IMG/VR virus record: IMGVR_UViG_3300031857_000002
Location: 256,176 to 320,175 of that record
Strand: one strand, 5' to 3'
DNA: 64,000 bases
Both the position numbers and the translations under genes were made by a program. Below are positions 5,453-39,711 of the stretch, one piece after another (within the stretch, counting starts at the first letter, position 1; each line of letters opens with the position of its first letter). Under the pieces are notes generated by a model. The model saw only the letters and a program-made list of their open reading frames with translations, made no database searches and was not told the origin of the DNA.

Positions 5453-5507
5453 CTCCTTTTTAATTACTATACAAGTATTATAGCAAATTGGGATATTTTG
5501 GTCAACC
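5453..5507 (-). repeat. Early promoter-RBS cassette, copy 1 of 6
   Basis: GGTTGACC-17 bp-TATAATACTTGTATAGTAATTAAAAAGGAG; -35 at 5500-5505, -10 at 5477-5482. Confidence 0.9.
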
Positions 5508-5942: not shown

Positions 5943-5997
5943 CTCCTTTTTAATTACTATACAAGTATTATAGCAAATGGGGATTTATTGGTCAACC
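5943..5997 (-). repeat. Early promoter-RBS cassette, copy 2
   Basis: Near-identical to 5453-5507; TTGACC-17-TATAAT then AAGGAG. Confidence 0.9.
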
Positions 5998-6402: not shown

Positions 6403-6439
6403 ACAAGTATTATAGCAAACTGTAGATTAATGGTCAACC
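6402..6439 (-). repeat. Early promoter cassette, copy 3 (truncated; ATA replaced by ATG)
   Basis: GGTTGACC-17-TATAATACTTGT then ATG; no SD. Confidence 0.8.
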
Positions 6440-9914: not shown

Positions 9915-11174
9915 ATGCGCGACCTACTCGATTTACTCAAACTCTACGAAGCACCATCTAACAACTTGCCAAATGTTGATGAAATAGAAGCCTTTAAAAA
10001 GATCATTGCTGGCAAAATCAAACAACTCCCCGACGATGACAACACTGCCAAGGCACTTCGTGAAATTGAGGACCTGCTTAAACACGTGAATGCCGGGGGA
10101 AAAATGGGCATTATCAATGGCGAACTGGCCAGTGTCGATGACCCCACTGTGAGTGCGGCACAAAAGGAATTGGCCAGATATATCATGAGCATTGACATGA
10201 CTCCTGCTGATCGTGATCAATTGTTTACATTATGGCGCAACAACAAGTTGGTCAAGATTGATCAACTGTTGGGACCTGGCAAAAAGAACTTTAGCGAAAT
10301 CATCACTGGCTATAAAACAAACCCTGCTATCCGTGAATTGAGCAATGAACTCATGCGTATCAGTGCTCTAGGACAGGGCAAGGGCGAGTTTGGTCTCAGT
10401 GTCATGAGCAAAAGCATCAACAAACAAGAAGGCAAGGGCGACCTGAACATCAGTGGACGACCTATTGAAGTCAAAACAACAGATGGCGGTGCAGGTCGAT
10501 TCACTGACCAGGAAGTGCGCCCAGGCGCAGGGTTTGATCAGGCAGCTCGTCAACTGAACGCATTTATTAAACAATATCAACCCAACTTGGCCAAGAGTGG
10601 TGCCAACCTAGACGGACTTATTGGATTTTATGAAGTGTTAAAGACCAACCCTGATCTCAAGGAAGATGCGGCAGCATTACTTGACATGATCAGCAATGTG
10701 ATTCAAAATATTTTTGAAGGCGAAGATATTTCTAAGATTATCAAGGCCATCGAGCGCAGTGATGTAAACGGCGCCAAGCAGGAGTATGCCAAGGCCAACT
10801 TCAACTACTACATGAGCAAGAAAAAAGACGAGGGTGTGTTATACATTAGTTTAGTCAAAGATCCAATCATGACAGTGTTCTTTAAAGATGCTGATGAGTT
10901 GGCCGACAGTGGATTGCGCTTGCATGCTGGCACGACATACATTACCAGCACTTCGGATGTTCGCTTGCCATATCCGCAGATAGAAATTGTGGATACTACC
11001 GGTGGTGCAGGTGCAGGTGATGGCTCAGCTAACGCAGTCAATCCAGCGGCCTTGAGCAATCAAGATCTTGATGCTGTCAGCACAGGCGGACTACGTGGCC
11101 CAGGTGCAAAAAAAGCCCGAGCTCCAGTAGAACCTGATTTTGATGAGAAAACTACAGGGCGTAGAAAACGTTAA
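9915..11174 (+). CDS. Putative virion-internal protein with PD-(D/E)xK nuclease-like motif
   Basis: Leader [12 protein letters not shown]; GKGEFG...[16 protein letters not shown] (E...D...ExK). Confidence 0.5.
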
Positions 11175-11743
11175 CGAGCCAGTTGGCTGATGTGATCGCA
11201 GATGCCTAGTTTCAGTGCTTCTTCGGCACTCAAATAAACATCATGTGGTGGCAACAGAGTTTTCTTGATCTCTTCTTCACTTAATCCTGTACAAGTCATA
11301 TAGTGATTGACCATGCGTGTTTGTGTGAGTCCAAACTCTTTCATTGTGGCCAACAGCTCGTGATGTTTGCCATCACTGCCCCAGGCATACTGATGACTCA
11401 TGATACTAGTGTTGGGTGTGAGTGTTCTGCGCCCTGGTGAACCTGCTAGGAATATCAGCAACCCTGCACTGGCAATTTGGCCCAGGCCCACAGTCTTGAT
11501 GAATATGTTGGAACTCTTCATCACATCAATCAAGGCAAAAGCCGCACTCATGTCTCCACCTTCTGAGCAGATCATCAGCAGGAGTTCTTTGCGCTTTTTC
11601 TTAGACACAAAGTTTTCATGCAAGATCCACTCAATGATGGGTTTGATACTTTCATGGTCTACTTCACCCATAAAAACATACATGCCGTTGTCGGCTAGAT
11701 CTTGACTGTGAGAGCTTTCGCTTGTGTTAGTTTCTGTGACCAT
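11171..11743 (-). CDS. clpP: Second, divergent ClpP-family protease
   Basis: ICSEGGD, GQIASAG (Ser), IMSHQ (His), HDVYLSAEEALKLGICD (Asp). Confidence 0.85.
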   Translation of the reverse strand: MVTETNTSESSHSQDLADNGMYVFMGEVDHESIKPIIEWILHENFVSKKKRKELLLMICSEGGDMSAAFALIDVMKSSNIFIKTVGLGQIASAGLLIFLAGSPGRRTLTPNTSIMSHQYAWGSDGKHHELLATMKEFGLTQTRMVNHYMTCTGLSEEEIKKTLLPPHDVYLSAEEALKLGICDHISQLAR

Positions 11744-11790: not shown

Positions 11791-12873
11791 TTATGCCGTG
11801 CATTGAGAGCTTTTAATAACAGATAACTCAATATGCTGTACTGCCGCTAGAGCCTGAGTATTCTGCCCCAAACTCACCACAATACGGCTGTCTCGCACAA
11901 GATCACCATTGATACTGGTTTGATTGTTACGCCATTCTGCAAACGAAATGTCAGGTGCATACGGATGTGAATTGGTCCAATTTAGATCTTGCCATCTGTA
12001 ACAATCACGTTTGATCACTCGTCTTTCAGAATCTCTCATGATCAACTGCATCACAGGTGTAGACCCAATAAATGCATCATTCACAAGATGTAGCTTTTGG
12101 TAGTCGTTGAATCCCAAGGTATTCTGCCATTTGGTCCAGCGATTGGGATCTTGCGCAATCACTCTAATGTAAGTTTGATTGGCACAGTCCTGATTTTGAT
12201 TCCAACAGTTTCTTGCTTGAGGATTCTGTGAGGCAGCCTGTAACACTTCGTGCAGGCTGGTTATGTAACTATAGTTCCACTTCATTGAAAACGGAATTTC
12301 AATCAACGCCTGCCGATACTCGTCCATTCTCAACACAGTGGCGCCCAAGGTGATATCGAACGCACGTCGGGGAAAATCCGCTAGCACCCGGGACACAATT
12401 TGATCACCGCTGGCTCGTTCAGCCAGCAAGGTCTCTACTCTAGCACTGGCCACTGGCCCGTTTAGTTGTCCTGCTACAGCGGATCTTCCTAGGATTCTGT
12501 TGGCAATGGCACTGTGACTGACCCATATATCCATGACCATCACCGAGTTGTTGCCACGTGTGCTCTTGCTCAATATTTTGTAGTCTGTGACGTAGCCACT
12601 GCTGTAGTTGTACACATCGTTCTTGATCAGTTGTTTTTTGTCCGACTCTCGTTCGCTGAGAATCAACGTGCCCACAGCTTGGTCTACTGCCAGTACAAAT
12701 CCATTATGCCTGGCTTCGGTGTCATTGACACCTTGTGCCTCAACTTGAATATAGAACGACCGGGTTTGATTCTTCAGTAGCCACTGTCCAACAGTGATTG
12801 CAATGCTGACGTTTGAGTTAGCATGCGCCGCTCCCAGGGCCAATAGTAGCACCACTGCAATTAGTTTTTTCAT
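11791..12873 (-). CDS. Secreted protein with LPP20/FlgT-N-like domain
   Basis: Signal peptide MKKLIAVVLLLALGAAHA; A.G....EAR..G...AV.QAVG..I.SE pattern. Confidence 0.55.
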   Translation of the reverse strand: MKKLIAVVLLLALGAAHANSNVSIAITVGQWLLKNQTRSFYIQVEAQGVNDTEARHNGFVLAVDQAVGTLILSERESDKKQLIKNDVYNYSSGYVTDYKILSKSTRGNNSVMVMDIWVSHSAIANRILGRSAVAGQLNGPVASARVETLLAERASGDQIVSRVLADFPRRAFDITLGATVLRMDEYRQALIEIPFSMKWNYSYITSLHEVLQAASQNPQARNCWNQNQDCANQTYIRVIAQDPNRWTKWQNTLGFNDYQKLHLVNDAFIGSTPVMQLIMRDSERRVIKRDCYRWQDLNWTNSHPYAPDISFAEWRNNQTSINGDLVRDSRIVVSLGQNTQALAAVQHIELSVIKSSQCTA

Positions 12874-12879
12874 GGCAGA

Positions 12880-13515
12880 TCAACGAGTGTTACCAAATTT
12901 ATTTTGCAACATATTAGCAGTGCGTTCGCTGGTCTTGTCCCAGCGAATGGTCACTGCAACTTCTTGGCCGCCAACAACTTCTTCTTTCACTGTGTAGAAC
13001 CCTCTAAGGATTGCTGAACTGTTGGCTTTCACACTGGATGTCAGTCTCATGGCAGTGTCGTTGCTGTTTTCACGCACACTCACATTGGTCTGCGTGGCTT
13101 CTTTGTCGGTCATCTCCACAGGATCATGACCACCATGATTGGTGTTGAGTTTGTCTTTGGCCTTTTCCACGTTCTTGGCAATGGTACTGGTCACTCGTGA
13201 GCTGTTGATCTCTTCACGAATAAAGTGAGAAACATTGGCTCGAGCATTGTTGCCAGCATGAATCAGAGCTGTTTTACGATTCATCACAGTGTTGCCATTA
13301 GATGGTGCTGTGCCCACAGCTTCGATACTTACAATTTCACAGTCGTCTTTGAAAGGTTTGTACCAGCGGCAGTTGGTCTCAATCTTCACACGCTCACTTA
13401 CAAAACTTGTGGCCAGTTTCTGATTGCGAACTTGTTCATCACTGTTGGTAACTGCGGTGGTCGAACATCCTGTTATGGCCAAAGCGGCTACTAGGGTCAG
13501 TAATTTAAAATTCAT
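12880..13515 (-). CDS. Lipoprotein, LPP20-like
   Basis: Lipobox LAITG-C; A.G.AP...RK.A...A...AN pattern. Confidence 0.65.
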   Translation of the reverse strand: MNFKLLTLVAALAITGCSTTAVTNSDEQVRNQKLATSFVSERVKIETNCRWYKPFKDDCEIVSIEAVGTAPSNGNTVMNRKTALIHAGNNARANVSHFIREEINSSRVTSTIAKNVEKAKDKLNTNHGGHDPVEMTDKEATQTNVSVRENSNDTAMRLTSSVKANSSAILRGFYTVKEEVVGGQEVAVTIRWDKTSERTANMLQNKFGNTR

Positions 13516-13544
13516 TTCAATCTCCAAAAAGTTTAAGATAGTGT

Positions 13545-13573
13545 ATTGTAACGCAAAAAGATTTATTCGTCAA
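13545..13573 (-). promoter_or_regulatory. sigma70-type promoter
   Basis: TTGACG-17-TACAAT upstream of lipoprotein operon. Confidence 0.7.
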
Positions 13574-13799
13574 CTTGATCAATACCAAAATGGCGTCTGA
13601 CTGCCCGGCTGGTGTTCCAGCCAATGTTTTGGAACAGGTTTCGGTCAATCACTGTGGTACATTCTTCTACAATCAACTCGGCGAACTTTTGGTAAGCCTG
13701 TTCACATTCTTCGGCACCCATCCATTTGGGCCATGGTTCGCCTTTGACGTCCACATACATTCCTGCCTCTTGAGCAAGTTCTTGAATTCGTTTGTTCAT
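13563..13799 (-). CDS. Hypothetical protein
   Basis: 78 aa, ATGA-coupled to upstream gene. Confidence 0.6.
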   Translation of the reverse strand: MNKRIQELAQEAGMYVDVKGEPWPKWMGAEECEQAYQKFAELIVEECTTVIDRNLFQNIGWNTSRAVRRHFGIDQVDE

Positions 13800-14428
13800 G
13801 TTCGTTCCTCAATGGAATAAAACCAATCATCCCCGGCTGACCACTTGCGTGTGCCATCCACTGTGAATATGGTCTGTGCGGCCTTGAAGTCTGGAAACTT
13901 AACATTGCCAGAAATCAAACTTTGATCATACCACAAGCATCGATTGTTGGGCTGGCAGGCAAACTGTCCGTTTTCTAATCGAATAAAATTAAAGCTCTTG
14001 TGTTCTTCTGCAACTTCGGTAAAACCGGTGTCCACATCCATGCCGTCGGCACAAAAGTCCACAGTGAACAAATAGGTTCCGTGATGCCATTCTTTGTCTT
14101 TGCCCAGAAACTTCACACCTAGATTACGTAGACCTATTTTTTCAATGATAGTGAAACGATAACCCATACAATCCCAAAGCTGTAGGATATCTATGGGTAG
14201 ATTGCCGGTGTGGTCTTGTTGCCATACATAGGCATGGATTGGCAATTTGTCGTAGAGTGCTCCGTAGTTGGGCAACAAGCTCTCAATACGAAACACTTGT
14301 CCACGTAGAGCTTTGAGACTGACCCAGATGGCGGGTTCAAGTTCTCCATGACCTTGTTCAAAGTTATAGAGAAATTCTCGTTTGACCCAACACTTGATGG
14401 GCGGTAATGATCCCACAATGTAACTCAT
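13796..14428 (-). CDS. Hypothetical phage protein
   Basis: 210-aa ORF in coupled operon; no motif assigned. Confidence 0.7.
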   Translation of the reverse strand: MSYIVGSLPPIKCWVKREFLYNFEQGHGELEPAIWVSLKALRGQVFRIESLLPNYGALYDKLPIHAYVWQQDHTGNLPIDILQLWDCMGYRFTIIEKIGLRNLGVKFLGKDKEWHHGTYLFTVDFCADGMDVDTGFTEVAEEHKSFNFIRLENGQFACQPNNRCLWYDQSLISGNVKFPDFKAAQTIFTVDGTRKWSAGDDWFYSIEERT

Positions 14429-14577
14429 GCTGTGTCCCGGTTGCGATGTTTGACCTTGCGATTATACACGATCTTGGATTTTTCTGCACGTGATTTGAAC
14501 GGGGTGTCGCGAGCGTACAACTCCACAGCACGTCTGCGCAGTCTAGGTATTTGTAATACTAAAGTTATAGGTTTCAT
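14425..14577 (-). CDS. ArfA-like (alternative ribosome-rescue factor-like) small basic protein
   Basis: Hand translation MKPITLVLQIPRLRRRAVELYARDTPFKSRAEKSKIVYNRKVKHRNRDTA; aligns by eye to E. coli Arf[16 protein letters not shown]...[10 protein letters not shown]; stop overlaps next ATG. Confidence 0.5.
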   Translation of the reverse strand: MKPITLVLQIPRLRRRAVELYARDTPFKSRAEKSKIVYNRKVKHRNRDTA

Positions 14578-14610
14578 GTTTACTTCATAAAAAAATCCGA
14601 TCCATGCGTT

Positions 14611-14639
14611 ATTATAGCACGAACCGGATTATGTGTCAA
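14611..14639 (-). promoter_or_regulatory. sigma70-type promoter
   Basis: TTGACA-17-TATAAT, perfect consensus, upstream of ArfA-like ORF. Confidence 0.85.
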
Positions 14640-14663
14640 GTACCCTTACGGAGTACAGGGCAA

Positions 14664-14939
14664 TTACTTCTTAGAAGTAGTAGATTGGTAAGCCTTCATG
14701 ATACCTTCACCAAACTTGGTGTAGTCAAACTTCATGGCTTCTTGTGAGGCCTTGACCATTTCGCTAGTTAATGTAGCAAATGTATCTGTACCAACTTTGG
14801 CAGCTTTCTTTGTGTAAGAGGCTTGCTCATCAATGAAAGTGTTCATTGCGTCTGCGATTTTTTCGTTTTGGACAAATGTCTTGACAAATTGTTTTTTACC
14901 GGTTTGTACGGCGTCGATTGTTGCGTCTAATGTAAACAT
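14664..14939 (-). CDS. Small helical protein, possibly phasin-like
   Basis: 91 aa, Ala/Thr/Lys/Gln-rich amphipathic; SD AGGAG; TGC-N3-GCA palindrome upstream. Confidence 0.45.
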   Translation of the reverse strand: MFTLDATIDAVQTGKKQFVKTFVQNEKIADAMNTFIDEQASYTKKAAKVGTDTFATLTSEMVKASQEAMKFDYTKFGEGIMKAYQSTTSKK

Positions 14940-14999
14940 AATTTTCTCCTATTAAGCGAGTTTACTACAGGGCCCGACCTATTCAGCACCCTATGTTCT

Positions 15000-15032
15000 A
15001 TTGTAACATTATTTATGTTGCGGCGCAACATA
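15000..15032 (-). promoter_or_regulatory. sigma70 promoter overlapped by palindromic operator (PhaR-like)
   Basis: TTGCGC-17-TACAAT; perfect inverted repeat TATGTTGC-GGC-GCAACATA (15014-15032) covers -35. Confidence 0.55.
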
Positions 15033-15088
15033 TTTTGATATTTTTTCTAGTGAATGGTCACTAATAAATAACTGTATAGGAGAACATT

Positions 15089-15340
15089 ATGTTTACAAAA
15101 ATCAAAGAATTCTTGTTTGGTAAAGACCCGGTACAATCACCTGTGGCGGCACCTTACAAGGTTGATGCACCGGCAGAAGTTGGCAAGCCAGCTGACGATC
15201 GAGTTGAAGCACCTGCACCAGTTGCGGCTGCTAAACCGGCTGTCAAGGCACCTGCCAAGAAAGCACCAGCACCAAAAGCTGAGCCTAAGCCCAAATCACC
15301 ACCAAAACCGCGAGCTCCTCGAAAGCCTGCGGCCAAGTAA
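15089..15340 (+). CDS. Pro/Ala/Lys-rich small protein
   Basis: TAAATA upstream, SD AGGAG; PAKKAPAPKAEPK tail. Confidence 0.7.
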   Translation: MFTKIKEFLFGKDPVQSPVAAPYKVDAPAEVGKPADDRVEAPAPVAAAKPAVKAPAKKAPAPKAEPKPKSPPKPRAPRKPAAK

Positions 15341-15365
15341 AAAAACCCCGAAAGGGGCTTTTTTT
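15340..15365. terminator. Bidirectional terminator
   Basis: AAAAAAACCCCGAAAGGGGCTTTTTT. Confidence 0.75.
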
Positions 15366-15846
15366 ATCTAGTAATCATAGCAAAAGTAAACAGCACGACA
15401 GGGACAGCTATTGCCATGAAACTGGTACCTATGAGTAGTCTATCTATCATGTCGGACTGTGCTTGAATTCTAGCATTTTTTATGTCTGCCTGTAGCTTGG
15501 CACGTTCTTTGTACATACGCACACGTTCAGCCATCATTTCGTCCCATACATCCTTGTTGCCTGACCATATCAACATCTCTTTTAGTTCTTTCTCAGCATC
15601 TCGCAGTGCCTTGCTCTGCATGGCAATCTGTACAGACATTGCTCTGATCTGCCCGTCGGTGAGAATTTTTTTACTGGTTTGTGCCTCTATGCTGGCAGCG
15701 TGAATTGTGTCGCTGTTCTCAAAGAACTTGGCAAACTGTCCGTAGAGACTGTTGACATCCTTGCCCAGAGCAATGGCTTTTTTGATATAATTTACCGATT
15801 GTTGGGCGGCTGTGAACGCAATGCCAATTGTGATAGGATCAAGCAT
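15364..15846 (-). CDS. Coiled-coil protein with C-terminal TM helix
   Basis: MLDPITIG..., C-terminal hydrophobic anchor. Confidence 0.7.
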   Translation of the reverse strand: MLDPITIGIAFTAAQQSVNYIKKAIALGKDVNSLYGQFAKFFENSDTIHAASIEAQTSKKILTDGQIRAMSVQIAMQSKALRDAEKELKEMLIWSGNKDVWDEMMAERVRMYKERAKLQADIKNARIQAQSDMIDRLLIGTSFMAIAVPVVLFTFAMITR

Positions 15847-16006
15847 TTTTCTTGGGTTCCTTGTCTTTGGGCGGCTTTAGGGGCCTGTCCCATTGTACAC
15901 ATACCACCCGACGATTATAGACGTCACCCGTCCATGTCCACTTTACACACCTTGGCTCATTTGCCAGCATGCCTGCCAACATCAATGAGCCAATGGCGTT
16001 GAACAT
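15839..16006 (-). CDS. 55-aa two-Cys peptide
   Basis: MFNAIGSLMLAGMLANEPRCVKWTWTGDVYNRRVVCVQWDRPLKPPKDKEPKKNA; exactly fills gap between genes. Confidence 0.55.
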   Translation of the reverse strand: MFNAIGSLMLAGMLANEPRCVKWTWTGDVYNRRVVCVQWDRPLKPPKDKEPKKNA

Positions 16007-38875: not shown

Positions 38876-38927
38876 CTCCTTTTAGTTACTATACAAGTAT
38901 TATAGCAAAATGGGATTTATTGGTCAA
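38876..38927 (-). repeat. Early promoter-RBS cassette, copy 4
   Basis: TTGACC-17-TATAATACTTGTATAGTAACTAAAAGGAG. Confidence 0.9.
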
Positions 38928-39326: not shown

Positions 39327-39380
39327 CTCCTTTTAGTTACTATACAAGTATTATAGCAAAATGGGATTTATTGGTCAACC
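39327..39380 (-). repeat. Early promoter-RBS cassette, copy 5
   Basis: Essentially identical to copy 4. Confidence 0.9.
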
Positions 39381-39656: not shown

Positions 39657-39711
39657 CTCCTTTTTAATTACTATACAAGTATTATAGCAAAATGGGATTT
39701 ATTGGTCAACC
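39657..39711 (-). repeat. Early promoter-RBS cassette, copy 6
   Basis: Near-identical to copy 2. Confidence 0.9.

Follow-up and report, generated by a model that had tools for sequence, protein, structure and literature searches.

Can a phage carry a version of a bacterial ribosome-rescue factor that is never switched off? The question is raised by a short open reading frame (ORF) in a 64,000-nucleotide stretch of DNA (hereafter the window; positions 256,176 to 320,175 of the IMG/VR virus record IMGVR_UViG_3300031857_000002), which would encode a protein of 50 amino acids (aa) resembling the rescue factor ArfA. The window is the final 64 kb of this 320,175-bp record, which is 92% complete by CheckV, has a GC content of 44.3% and comes from a jumbo phage; the DNA sources of the region around the ArfA-like gene are lake and other freshwater metagenomes. 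Ribosome rescue is usually viewed as bacterial housekeeping and back-up, and ArfA as a fail-safe that is silenced by transfer-messenger RNA (tmRNA). Bacterial arfA gives rise to a non-stop message by way of an internal hairpin, encodes a hydrophobic tail and is repressed by tmRNA. Comparison at the level of sequence indicates that the phage gene probably encodes an ArfA made directly in its short active form, which would carry out constitutive, release factor (RF)-dependent rescue.

Conservation of the gene and its likeness to ArfA

The 50-aa ORF is a real gene under purifying selection and is widespread in large freshwater phages. An original prediction, made from the letters of the window, had pointed to an ORF too short for the gene track, and the ORF list contains it as described (Table 1). 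Its TGA stop codon shares bases with the start codon of the next gene (ATGA). A word-indexed search of metagenome proteins returned 48 cluster representatives with 64–100% identity, nearly all of 49–51 aa, and a scan of IMG/VR returned 60 related loci with 42–100% identity, many of them on contigs of 100–364 kb. One locus, truncated at a contig end, was left out of the analyses of related loci; in all of the remaining 59 the ORF is intact and 49–55 aa long. For 48 distinct coding sequences from viral contigs, the median ratio of nonsynonymous to synonymous substitution rates (dN/dS) is 0.225 over 298 pairs, and third codon positions are about twice as variable as the first two. An antisense ORF of 52 aa (14432–14590, plus strand) was also considered and was rejected because the variability by codon position matches the frame on the minus strand. 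The neighbours downstream of the ArfA-like gene vary among relatives, and the gene and its promoter persist. IMG automatically names one distant family member ArfA, and the subfamily of the window protein is called 'hypothetical protein' throughout.

The likeness of the protein to ArfA is supported as remote homology over ArfA residues ~12–51. Because the sequences are short and basic, this support comes from profiles and controls and not from the E-values of single sequences. In a BLASTP alignment with ArfA of E. coli K-12 (fetched from NC_000913.3, which agrees with the ArfA string given in the original prediction), 36% of 42 aa are identical and a single gap of 3 residues is opened (pairwise E = 5e-6). 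When 177,635 PDB sequences were searched with the window protein by phmmer, all four matches were ArfA chains (E = 0.29–0.54), and hmmsearch of the PDB with a profile of 42 close homologues found six, again all ArfA (best E = 0.032). The same close-family profile retrieved 80 proteins at E <= 1e-3 from 1.84 billion representatives, ~76 of them of 38–84 aa. The extended family comprises 77 aligned sequences; the Pfam DUF7230 model recognizes 20 of them and the ArfA model 2 (E < 0.01). For comparison of profiles, an ArfA alignment of 31 sequences was built from E. coli ArfA and 30 diverse sequences found with the Pfam model in 401 Pseudomonadota genomes. Aligned by hhalign, the 77-sequence family reaches a probability of 90% against E. 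coli ArfA alone and of 92.6% against the 31-sequence alignment (E = 4.6e-7, score 35.9), whereas 200 column shuffles of the ArfA alignment score 9.5 on average (sd 2.2, maximum 18.5) and the reversed alignment scores 15.0. In a six-frame search of a whole Escherichia genome with the family profile, arfA is the top match (E = 5.2e-4). The ArfA of Pseudoalteromonas phage J2-1 bridges the families, scoring above threshold with both PF03889 (ArfA, 41.3 bits) and PF23876 (DUF7230, 28.6 bits) and reaching 94.9% with the family profile. Column entropies of the phage family and of ArfA are correlated (Spearman 0.68, p = 4e-6), and the most conserved columns are common to both: F27/F25, Y38/Y39, R40/R41, K43H44/K44H45 and E32/E30 (phage/ArfA). 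A language-model search also placed DUF7230 and ArfA clusters among the nearest named clusters.

The predicted likeness to ArfA is thus borne out by the PDB matches, the hhalign probability, the genome search and the bridging phage protein. The proposed check by profile and by AlphaFold model was positive in its first part and not in its second. In the AlphaFold2 (AF2) model the chain is extended and has a single short helix (residues 17–21; predicted local distance difference test score, pLDDT, 86; predicted template modelling score, pTM, 0.31), and neither Foldseek against the PDB nor VIA-align wide found a match for the model. Empty structure searches are expected because such a peptide would fold only on the ribosome.

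The residues known to matter in ArfA were compared column by column between the 77 phage-family and the 31 ArfA sequences, with the roles of residues taken from a review (PMC8012679). ArfA has a helix spanning residues 15–24 at the decoding centre (PMC8012679), and its start is kept in the window protein as A17/A15, E19/E17 and D24/D22 (window/ArfA). F27 corresponds to Phe25 of ArfA, which packs against strands beta4/beta5 of RF2 (PMC8012679), and is F in 75/76 aligned family sequences. The ArfA strand Q27–E30, which extends the RF2 sheet (PMC8012679), is represented by K28/R26, R30/R28, A31/V29 (V or I mostly) and E32/E30, in the pattern S/P-K/R-V/I/A-E. Helix, Phe25 and beta-strand of ArfA therefore all appear to have counterparts in the phage protein. 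Lys31/Lys33 of ArfA are also kept, as is the basic tail. In the extended family, the equivalent of Tyr39-x-Arg41-Lys42 retains Y38 in 73/77 and R40 in 77/77 sequences, and the equivalent of Lys44-His45, which in ArfA occupies a pocket of the mRNA entry channel (PMC8012679), retains K43 in 65/77 and H44 in 60/77; all four residues are invariant in the close family.

The C-terminal end fits the active form of ArfA. The original prediction had placed the stop just past the basic region, and in the window protein the last residue indeed corresponds to ArfA residue 51. ArfA in its active form has 52–55 aa, of which 46–48 are ordered on the ribosome, and is inactive when cut to 40 aa (PMC8012679). 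The loss of the regulatory tail was likewise anticipated correctly: the gene has its own stop codon directly after residue 50 with no hydrophobic extension, and its mRNA shows no hairpin (fold z = +1.24, versus z = -3.99 for the 3' hairpin of E. coli arfA). With no tail and no RNase III/terminator hairpin, the phage gene would therefore escape control by tmRNA.

Promoter, leader and neighbouring genes

The ArfA-like gene is the first gene behind a sigma-70 promoter. The predicted TTGACA-17-TATAAT element matches the consensus at 12/12 positions and has a TG-extended -10; it ends 33 bases before the ATG and puts the likely transcription start at ~14604. It is the sole 12/12 match in the scanned 8-kb region and one of three perfect matches in the phage. 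The whole window holds 14 promoter matches with at most one mismatch, all on the minus (gene-coding) strand, versus 0.56 expected from shuffles, so these near-consensus sites are taken as real promoters of host type. In 54/59 related loci, the homologous ORF is directly preceded by a promoter that has a 17-nt spacer and matches at 10/12 positions or more. Elsewhere in the window, a near-identical promoter cassette, TTGACCAATAAATCCC(C/A)(A/T)TTTGCTATAAT, stands in at least four copies before small genes and looks like a phage-specific family of early promoters.

The promoter overlaps the intrinsic terminator of the upstream 91-aa gene, such that the -10 hexamer sits in the terminator loop. The stretch 14575–14665 (minus strand) folds with -28 kcal/mol (z = -4.17), and 0/200 shuffles fold as well. 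A transcript begun at the promoter does not contain the terminator's 5' arm and would escape termination. The interlaced arrangement also occurs in the relatives L003–L005, whereas L001 and L002 have a separate classical terminator and promoter. Related sequence is present in four metatranscriptome assemblies, which consist of assembled contigs and prove neither transcription nor 5' ends; two of the contigs stop where the U-run ends, at 14586 and 14590, and give the terminator weak backing. An Rfam scan of window positions 13000–16000 returned nothing above threshold.

The leader differs among relatives. The Shine-Dalgarno-like site is weak in the window phage and reads GGAG or GGAGG in close relatives, and in many distant relatives the leader is missing altogether. 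The ATG lies 6 or 9 nt past the -10 in about two thirds of the 54 promoter-bearing related loci, which implies a leaderless mRNA; in most distant relatives, this layout comes with a TTGAC(C/T)-17-TATAAT promoter. It is found at 28/41 distinct promoters of the ArfA-like gene versus 16/78 others in the same loci (Fisher p = 7e-7, uncorrected for relatedness). The layout also serves other genes of these phages.

Table 1. Location of the ArfA-like gene, its control signals and the associated features (positions refer to the window unless a contig or locus is named).
Feature	Position	Strand	Remarks
ArfA-like coding sequence, 50 aa	14425..14577	-	ATG 14577-14575, TGA 14427-14425; protein MKPITLVLQIPRLRRRAVELYARDTPFKSRAEKSKIVYNRKVKHRNRDTA
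Sigma-70 promoter	14611..14639	-	-35 TTGACA 14639-14634, 17-nt spacer, TG-extended -10 TATAAT 14616-14611; 12/12 consensus
Intrinsic terminator of 91-aa gene	14589..14630	-	14-bp stem (14630-14617 with 14607-14594), U-run 14593-14589
Shine-Dalgarno-like GAAG, weak	14583..14586	-	5 nt before ATG; A/U-rich 5' leader of ~27 nt
91-aa gene, upstream neighbour	14664..14939	-	Pfam Phasin_2 E = 0.018, sub-threshold; terminator lies between it and the ArfA-like gene
210-aa gene, downstream, translationally coupled	13796..14428	-	PHROG phrog_3704 E = 1e-74, PHROGs label 'ferredoxin'
215-aa secreted/lipoprotein-like gene	12880-13527	-	lipobox-like LAITGCS
360-aa secreted/lipoprotein-like gene	11791-12873	-	signal peptide
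ClpP protease gene	11171..11743	-	Pfam CLP_protease E = 1.7e-29; ~2.7 kb downstream of the ArfA-like gene, same strand
Permuted (two-piece) tmRNA, tag ANDEQFALAA	C1:146463-147007, outside window (locus L120:10464-11008)	-	Rfam tmRNA_permuted, 104 bits
Promoter cassette copies	5967-5995, 38899-38927, 39350-39378, 39681-39709; variants 5477-5505, 6409-6437	-	
Leaderless-type loci	~3000 in each		L129-L133, L136, L140, L144-L147, L151-L154, L158, L161-L181, L183, L184

The phage also encodes a tmRNA. Its genome has 26 tRNA genes in a cluster (C1:136698-148365), and a permuted tmRNA lies inside this cluster. For the tmRNA, the permuted and alpha models give the highest scores, and a permuted tmRNA is present in 5/5 related large phage records checked (225–364 kb). 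A genome-wide search of the phage found no SmpB and no release-factor domains. When the tmRNA was compared by BLAST with 401 Pseudomonadota genomes, the matches were short conserved tmRNA segments only and no host was inferred; the large subunit of the phage's ribonucleotide reductase hints loosely at phages of Xanthomonas, Ralstonia and Stenotrophomonas. In 26/59 related loci a ClpP gene is found no more than 3 kb from the ArfA-like gene, as it also is in L001–L005. Together with the tmRNA, the nearby ClpP suggests a linked theme of rescue and degradation.

The immediate neighbours are conserved to different degrees. A homologue of the 91-aa gene stands upstream on the same strand in 34/59 related loci and in L001–L005. 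The 210-aa gene shares the transcription unit of the ArfA-like gene, occurs in 3/59 related loci and is left out of relatives' contigs from RNA libraries, where 13799 is joined to 14440 or 13786 to 14424; it is a variable insertion outside the conserved feature. A Pfam scan of its product gave no match. Cyanophage homologues of this product bear the annotations purM or ferredoxin; the label given by the database is doubtful. No family match was obtained for the two secreted or lipoprotein-like genes that stand between the ArfA-like operon and ClpP, and only 2/59 related loci have them.

Rescue factor, blocker or unrelated peptide

As a rescue factor, the peptide would work as follows. Host RNA polymerase would transcribe the gene early in infection, and the peptide would enter the vacant A site as well as the mRNA channel of ribosomes stalled at the 3' ends of truncated mRNAs, its basic tail occupying the channel that the missing mRNA leaves vacant in a non-stop ribosome. 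Through the Phe and the beta-strand it would recruit a class-I release factor, most likely RF2, which is taken to be the host's because the phage encodes none. Peptidyl-tRNA would then be hydrolysed and the ribosome recycled for phage translation. Since tmRNA would not regulate the gene, the peptide is thought to act in parallel with the phage's own tmRNA, as a second, tmRNA-independent rescue route. Such a route could add rescue capacity when mRNAs are cut, be it as the phage takes over its host or through host defences that cleave RNA. Rescue is favoured because the residues that contact RF2 are conserved.

Several observations weigh against rescue by a phage ArfA. The first concerns the KGKGS segment (K34–S38), which is invariant in 31/31 ArfA sequences and absent from the phage family, as the original prediction had noticed for the window protein; its site shows a 3-residue deletion, the BLASTP gap that takes out KGK, and the last two positions carry K/T and V/A. 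In E. coli ArfA, none of the KGKGS residues is essential on its own (PMC6299226). Second, the equivalent of Ala18 is Leu in 75/77 family members, where ArfA has a small residue (Ala in 28/31, Ser in 3/31). In ArfA, the substitution A18T blocks activation of RF2 by steric hindrance, with ribosome binding and recruitment of RF2 retained (PMC8012679). Third, the first 13 residues (MKPITLVLQIPR), alternating hydrophobic and then Pro-Arg, are unlike the N-terminus of ArfA. The ArfA N-terminus is a part that becomes ordered as RF2 opens. Together, the loss of KGKGS, the Leu at 18 and the new N-terminus suggest altered activation of the release factor, altered RF specificity or a change in the mRNA length that is tolerated. 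Fourth, prediction of a complex with RF2_ECOLI gave no answer (score 0.21 against a mark of 0.34) and was not used as evidence; the contact between ArfA and RF2 is ribosome-dependent. Recruitment would also depend on RF2 features of the host that suit the ArfA type.

Database models also fall short of naming the protein. The window protein matches neither the ArfA nor the DUF7230 model of Pfam nor any NCBIfam model. For PF03889 (threshold 25.5 bits), hmmscan gave no match at E <= 1 and the six-frame search of the genome none; for PF23876 (threshold 27 bits), neither hmmscan nor a search of the phage genome at E <= 10 returned a match. A comparison with PHROGs gave nothing useful, and when 50,697 phage records were searched by tblastn with the window protein and with two members of the extended family, the outcome was no match or a chance match only. 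Finally, partial convergence between short basic sequences is conceivable, and the unrelated ArfA and BrfA have a KH motif in common (PMC8012679).

The strongest competing explanation is that the peptide is an ArfA-derived blocker, which would fill the mRNA channel and the A site and may hold RF2 closed in the manner of ArfA(A18T). It may compete with host tmRNA–SmpB, with ArfA, with A-site toxins or with defence nucleases, or it may idle host ribosomes. This competitor or inhibitor stays under consideration because of the Leu at the position of Ala18, found in 75/77 sequences, and the N-terminus unrelated to that of ArfA: ArfA(A18T) binds ribosomes and recruits RF2 with no activation (PMC8012679). 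The deletion of the KGKGS loop, which shapes the channel plug of ArfA, points the same way, as does one family member encoded directly upstream of a homologue of the anti-defence protein Gad2. Conversely, the phage and 5/5 relatives carry a tmRNA, and a block of non-stop rescue would counter the phage's own gene. Trapping of RF2 would also harm phage translation, and the ArfA-like gene itself ends in UGA. Conservation is highest at the Phe and beta-strand that dock onto RF2, as would fit productive recruitment, and residue 18 is also Gln or Gly in cultured-phage proteins that score above the ArfA threshold. A blocker is accordingly judged unlikely. The Gad2 pair is an observation in its own right: P0120, a 52-aa member of the extended family, overlaps the start of the Gad2 homologue (PF26128, anti-Gabija) on a 124-kb phage contig (L122:5001-5718 and L123:3624-4341), in an apparent anti-defence block.

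A different release-factor preference is less probable still, and is best treated as a sub-variant of rescue by a phage ArfA. Like ArfT, the peptide might act through RF1, through both RF1 and RF2, or on longer 3' mRNA extensions. The different N-terminus, the Leu at 18 and the shortened channel loop would be in keeping with this, and ArfT is itself an unregulated protein of ~40 aa that works with either release factor (PMC6299226). Relatives of the window gene also occur in alphaproteobacterial phages, where ArfA is atypical. Against it stands Phe25, which is said to set the RF2 specificity of ArfA and is kept in 75/76 aligned sequences.

It is highly improbable that the gene encodes a small basic protein with some other target, such as RNA or DNA binding or regulation of the downstream genes, whose likeness to ArfA reflects composition or old ancestry. 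The sequence is indeed very short and rich in Lys/Arg, has no direct Pfam match and gave empty structure searches. Yet the likeness is position-specific and includes the non-basic residues Ala, Glu, Asp, Phe, Tyr and His; it survives the column-shuffle and reversal controls; the only PDB matches and the top genome match are ArfA; and the downstream genes differ among relatives. There is next to no chance that the ORF is a spurious frame beside a promoter that really serves the 210-aa gene, although its length is below the usual gene-calling limit and its Shine-Dalgarno site is weak in the window phage, since frame and length are kept in 48 distinct coding sequences with a dN/dS of 0.23 and the most variable positions in third place, and since 56/59 related loci lack the 210-aa gene yet retain the small ORF and promoter.

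Rescue by a phage-borne ArfA leads to a broader and more tentative proposal, which we regard as possible but somewhat doubtful. The window family, DUF7230 and the short phage ArfAs may form one mainly viral superfamily of always-on, RF-dependent rescue peptides, expressed from early promoters of host type and often leaderless; with tmRNA and ClpP, they would make up a viral kit for rescue and clean-up, and their RF specificity or tolerance of mRNA length would be unlike that of bacterial ArfA. If true, ribosomes would be kept available while mRNAs are cut by phage-induced host shut-off or by RNA-cleaving defences, and the link between rescue capacity and RNA-targeting anti-phage defence is testable. 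A widespread environmental lineage of large phages would hold the active core of ArfA freed of tmRNA control, behind a strong early promoter and beside a tmRNA of its own. Should the peptide prove active, it would demonstrate that phages manipulate translation at the step of non-stop rescue, and a function would be gained for DUF7230 and for many hypothetical small phage ORFs. An active peptide would also provide a natural minimal ArfA (50 aa, no KGKGS loop, a different activation end) for the study of RF switching that is free of a stop codon.

Comparison with known rescue systems

The closest well-described system is ArfA itself (YhdL; E. coli and the beta/gamma-proteobacteria, PF03889). The window protein can be aligned with it over residues 12–51 and has in common with it the Ala15-x-Glu helix, Asp22, Phe25, the (K/R)-x-(K/R)-(V/I/A)-Glu strand, Lys31/Lys33, Tyr39-x-Arg41-Lys42 and Lys44-His45; its size is that of the active part of ArfA that is ordered on the ribosome. 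Unlike ArfA, it has no KGKGS loop, carries Leu at 18 and an N-terminus of its own, ends at an ordinary stop without tail or hairpin, is phage-borne and falls below the Pfam threshold. DUF7230 (PF23876) shares a C-terminal pattern, F-(K/R)-x-(K/R)-V-E...Y-x-R-K-x-K-H, with the extended family and is rare in bacteria (2/401 Pseudomonadota genomes sampled). One chromosomal DUF7230 member (L185:1480-1710, plus strand, 76 aa) has a long, partly hydrophobic C-terminal extension past the basic core, which is reminiscent of the regulatory tail of ArfA. It lies between Fic-like and Mrr-like restriction genes in a proteobacterial genome in which no ArfA was detected.

Two further rescue factors resemble the window protein in design. 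ArfT of Francisella tularensis is RF-dependent, has 40 aa, a basic C-terminal stretch and an ordinary stop, and is free of regulation by truncated mRNA (PMC6299226). It differs in that it works with RF1 or RF2, is chromosomal and has a very narrow distribution, and no sequence relationship between it and the window protein was detected. BrfA of Bacillus subtilis recruits RF2 through addition of a beta-strand and inserts a Lys-His motif into the mRNA channel (PMC8012679). Its sequence is unrelated, its N-terminal helix lies between the subunits, and its regulation is by a terminator within the ORF, as in ArfA.

The nearest parallels come from cultured phages, and the window gene shows all four traits of the short phage ArfAs (phage-borne, 40–60 aa, ArfA core, stop after the basic region). 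The 51-aa protein of Pseudoalteromonas phage J2-1 (ATN93434.1) is annotated ArfA; it also lacks KGKGS and, from Phe27 of the window protein through to the last residue, aligns with the latter without gaps (46% identity). In Citromicrobium phage vB_CbaS-RXM, the 60-aa product of g10 is annotated ArfA and has the variant KGRGSY; the gene is mentioned in one sentence (PMC8953757). Pseudomonas phage pf16 encodes a 46-aa ArfA homologue (L196:1498-1638) and the Ralstonia jumbo phage RsoM2USA one of 40 aa (L195:1534-1656); both are unannotated, and an ORF on the opposite strand is annotated instead. The homologue in Salmonella phage Arash (gp99c, L197:1117-1341) is mislabelled 'ribosomal protein L2'. 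All five cultured-phage ArfAs pass the Pfam ArfA threshold, in contrast to the window protein. The N-terminal motif of ArfA, H-x-(R/K)-G-x-(I/V/T)-K, is kept in J2-1, pf16 and Arash and absent from RsoM2USA and RXM, and pf16, Arash and RsoM2USA keep KGKGS(Y/F), unlike the window protein. A survey of the literature turned up neither experimental work on a phage ArfA nor a paper about DUF7230. Short, stop-terminated phage ArfAs are not wholly new, since a few cultured phages have annotated ones; what is new here is the divergent variant, the link between DUF7230 and ArfA, and the pairing of the gene with a phage tmRNA.

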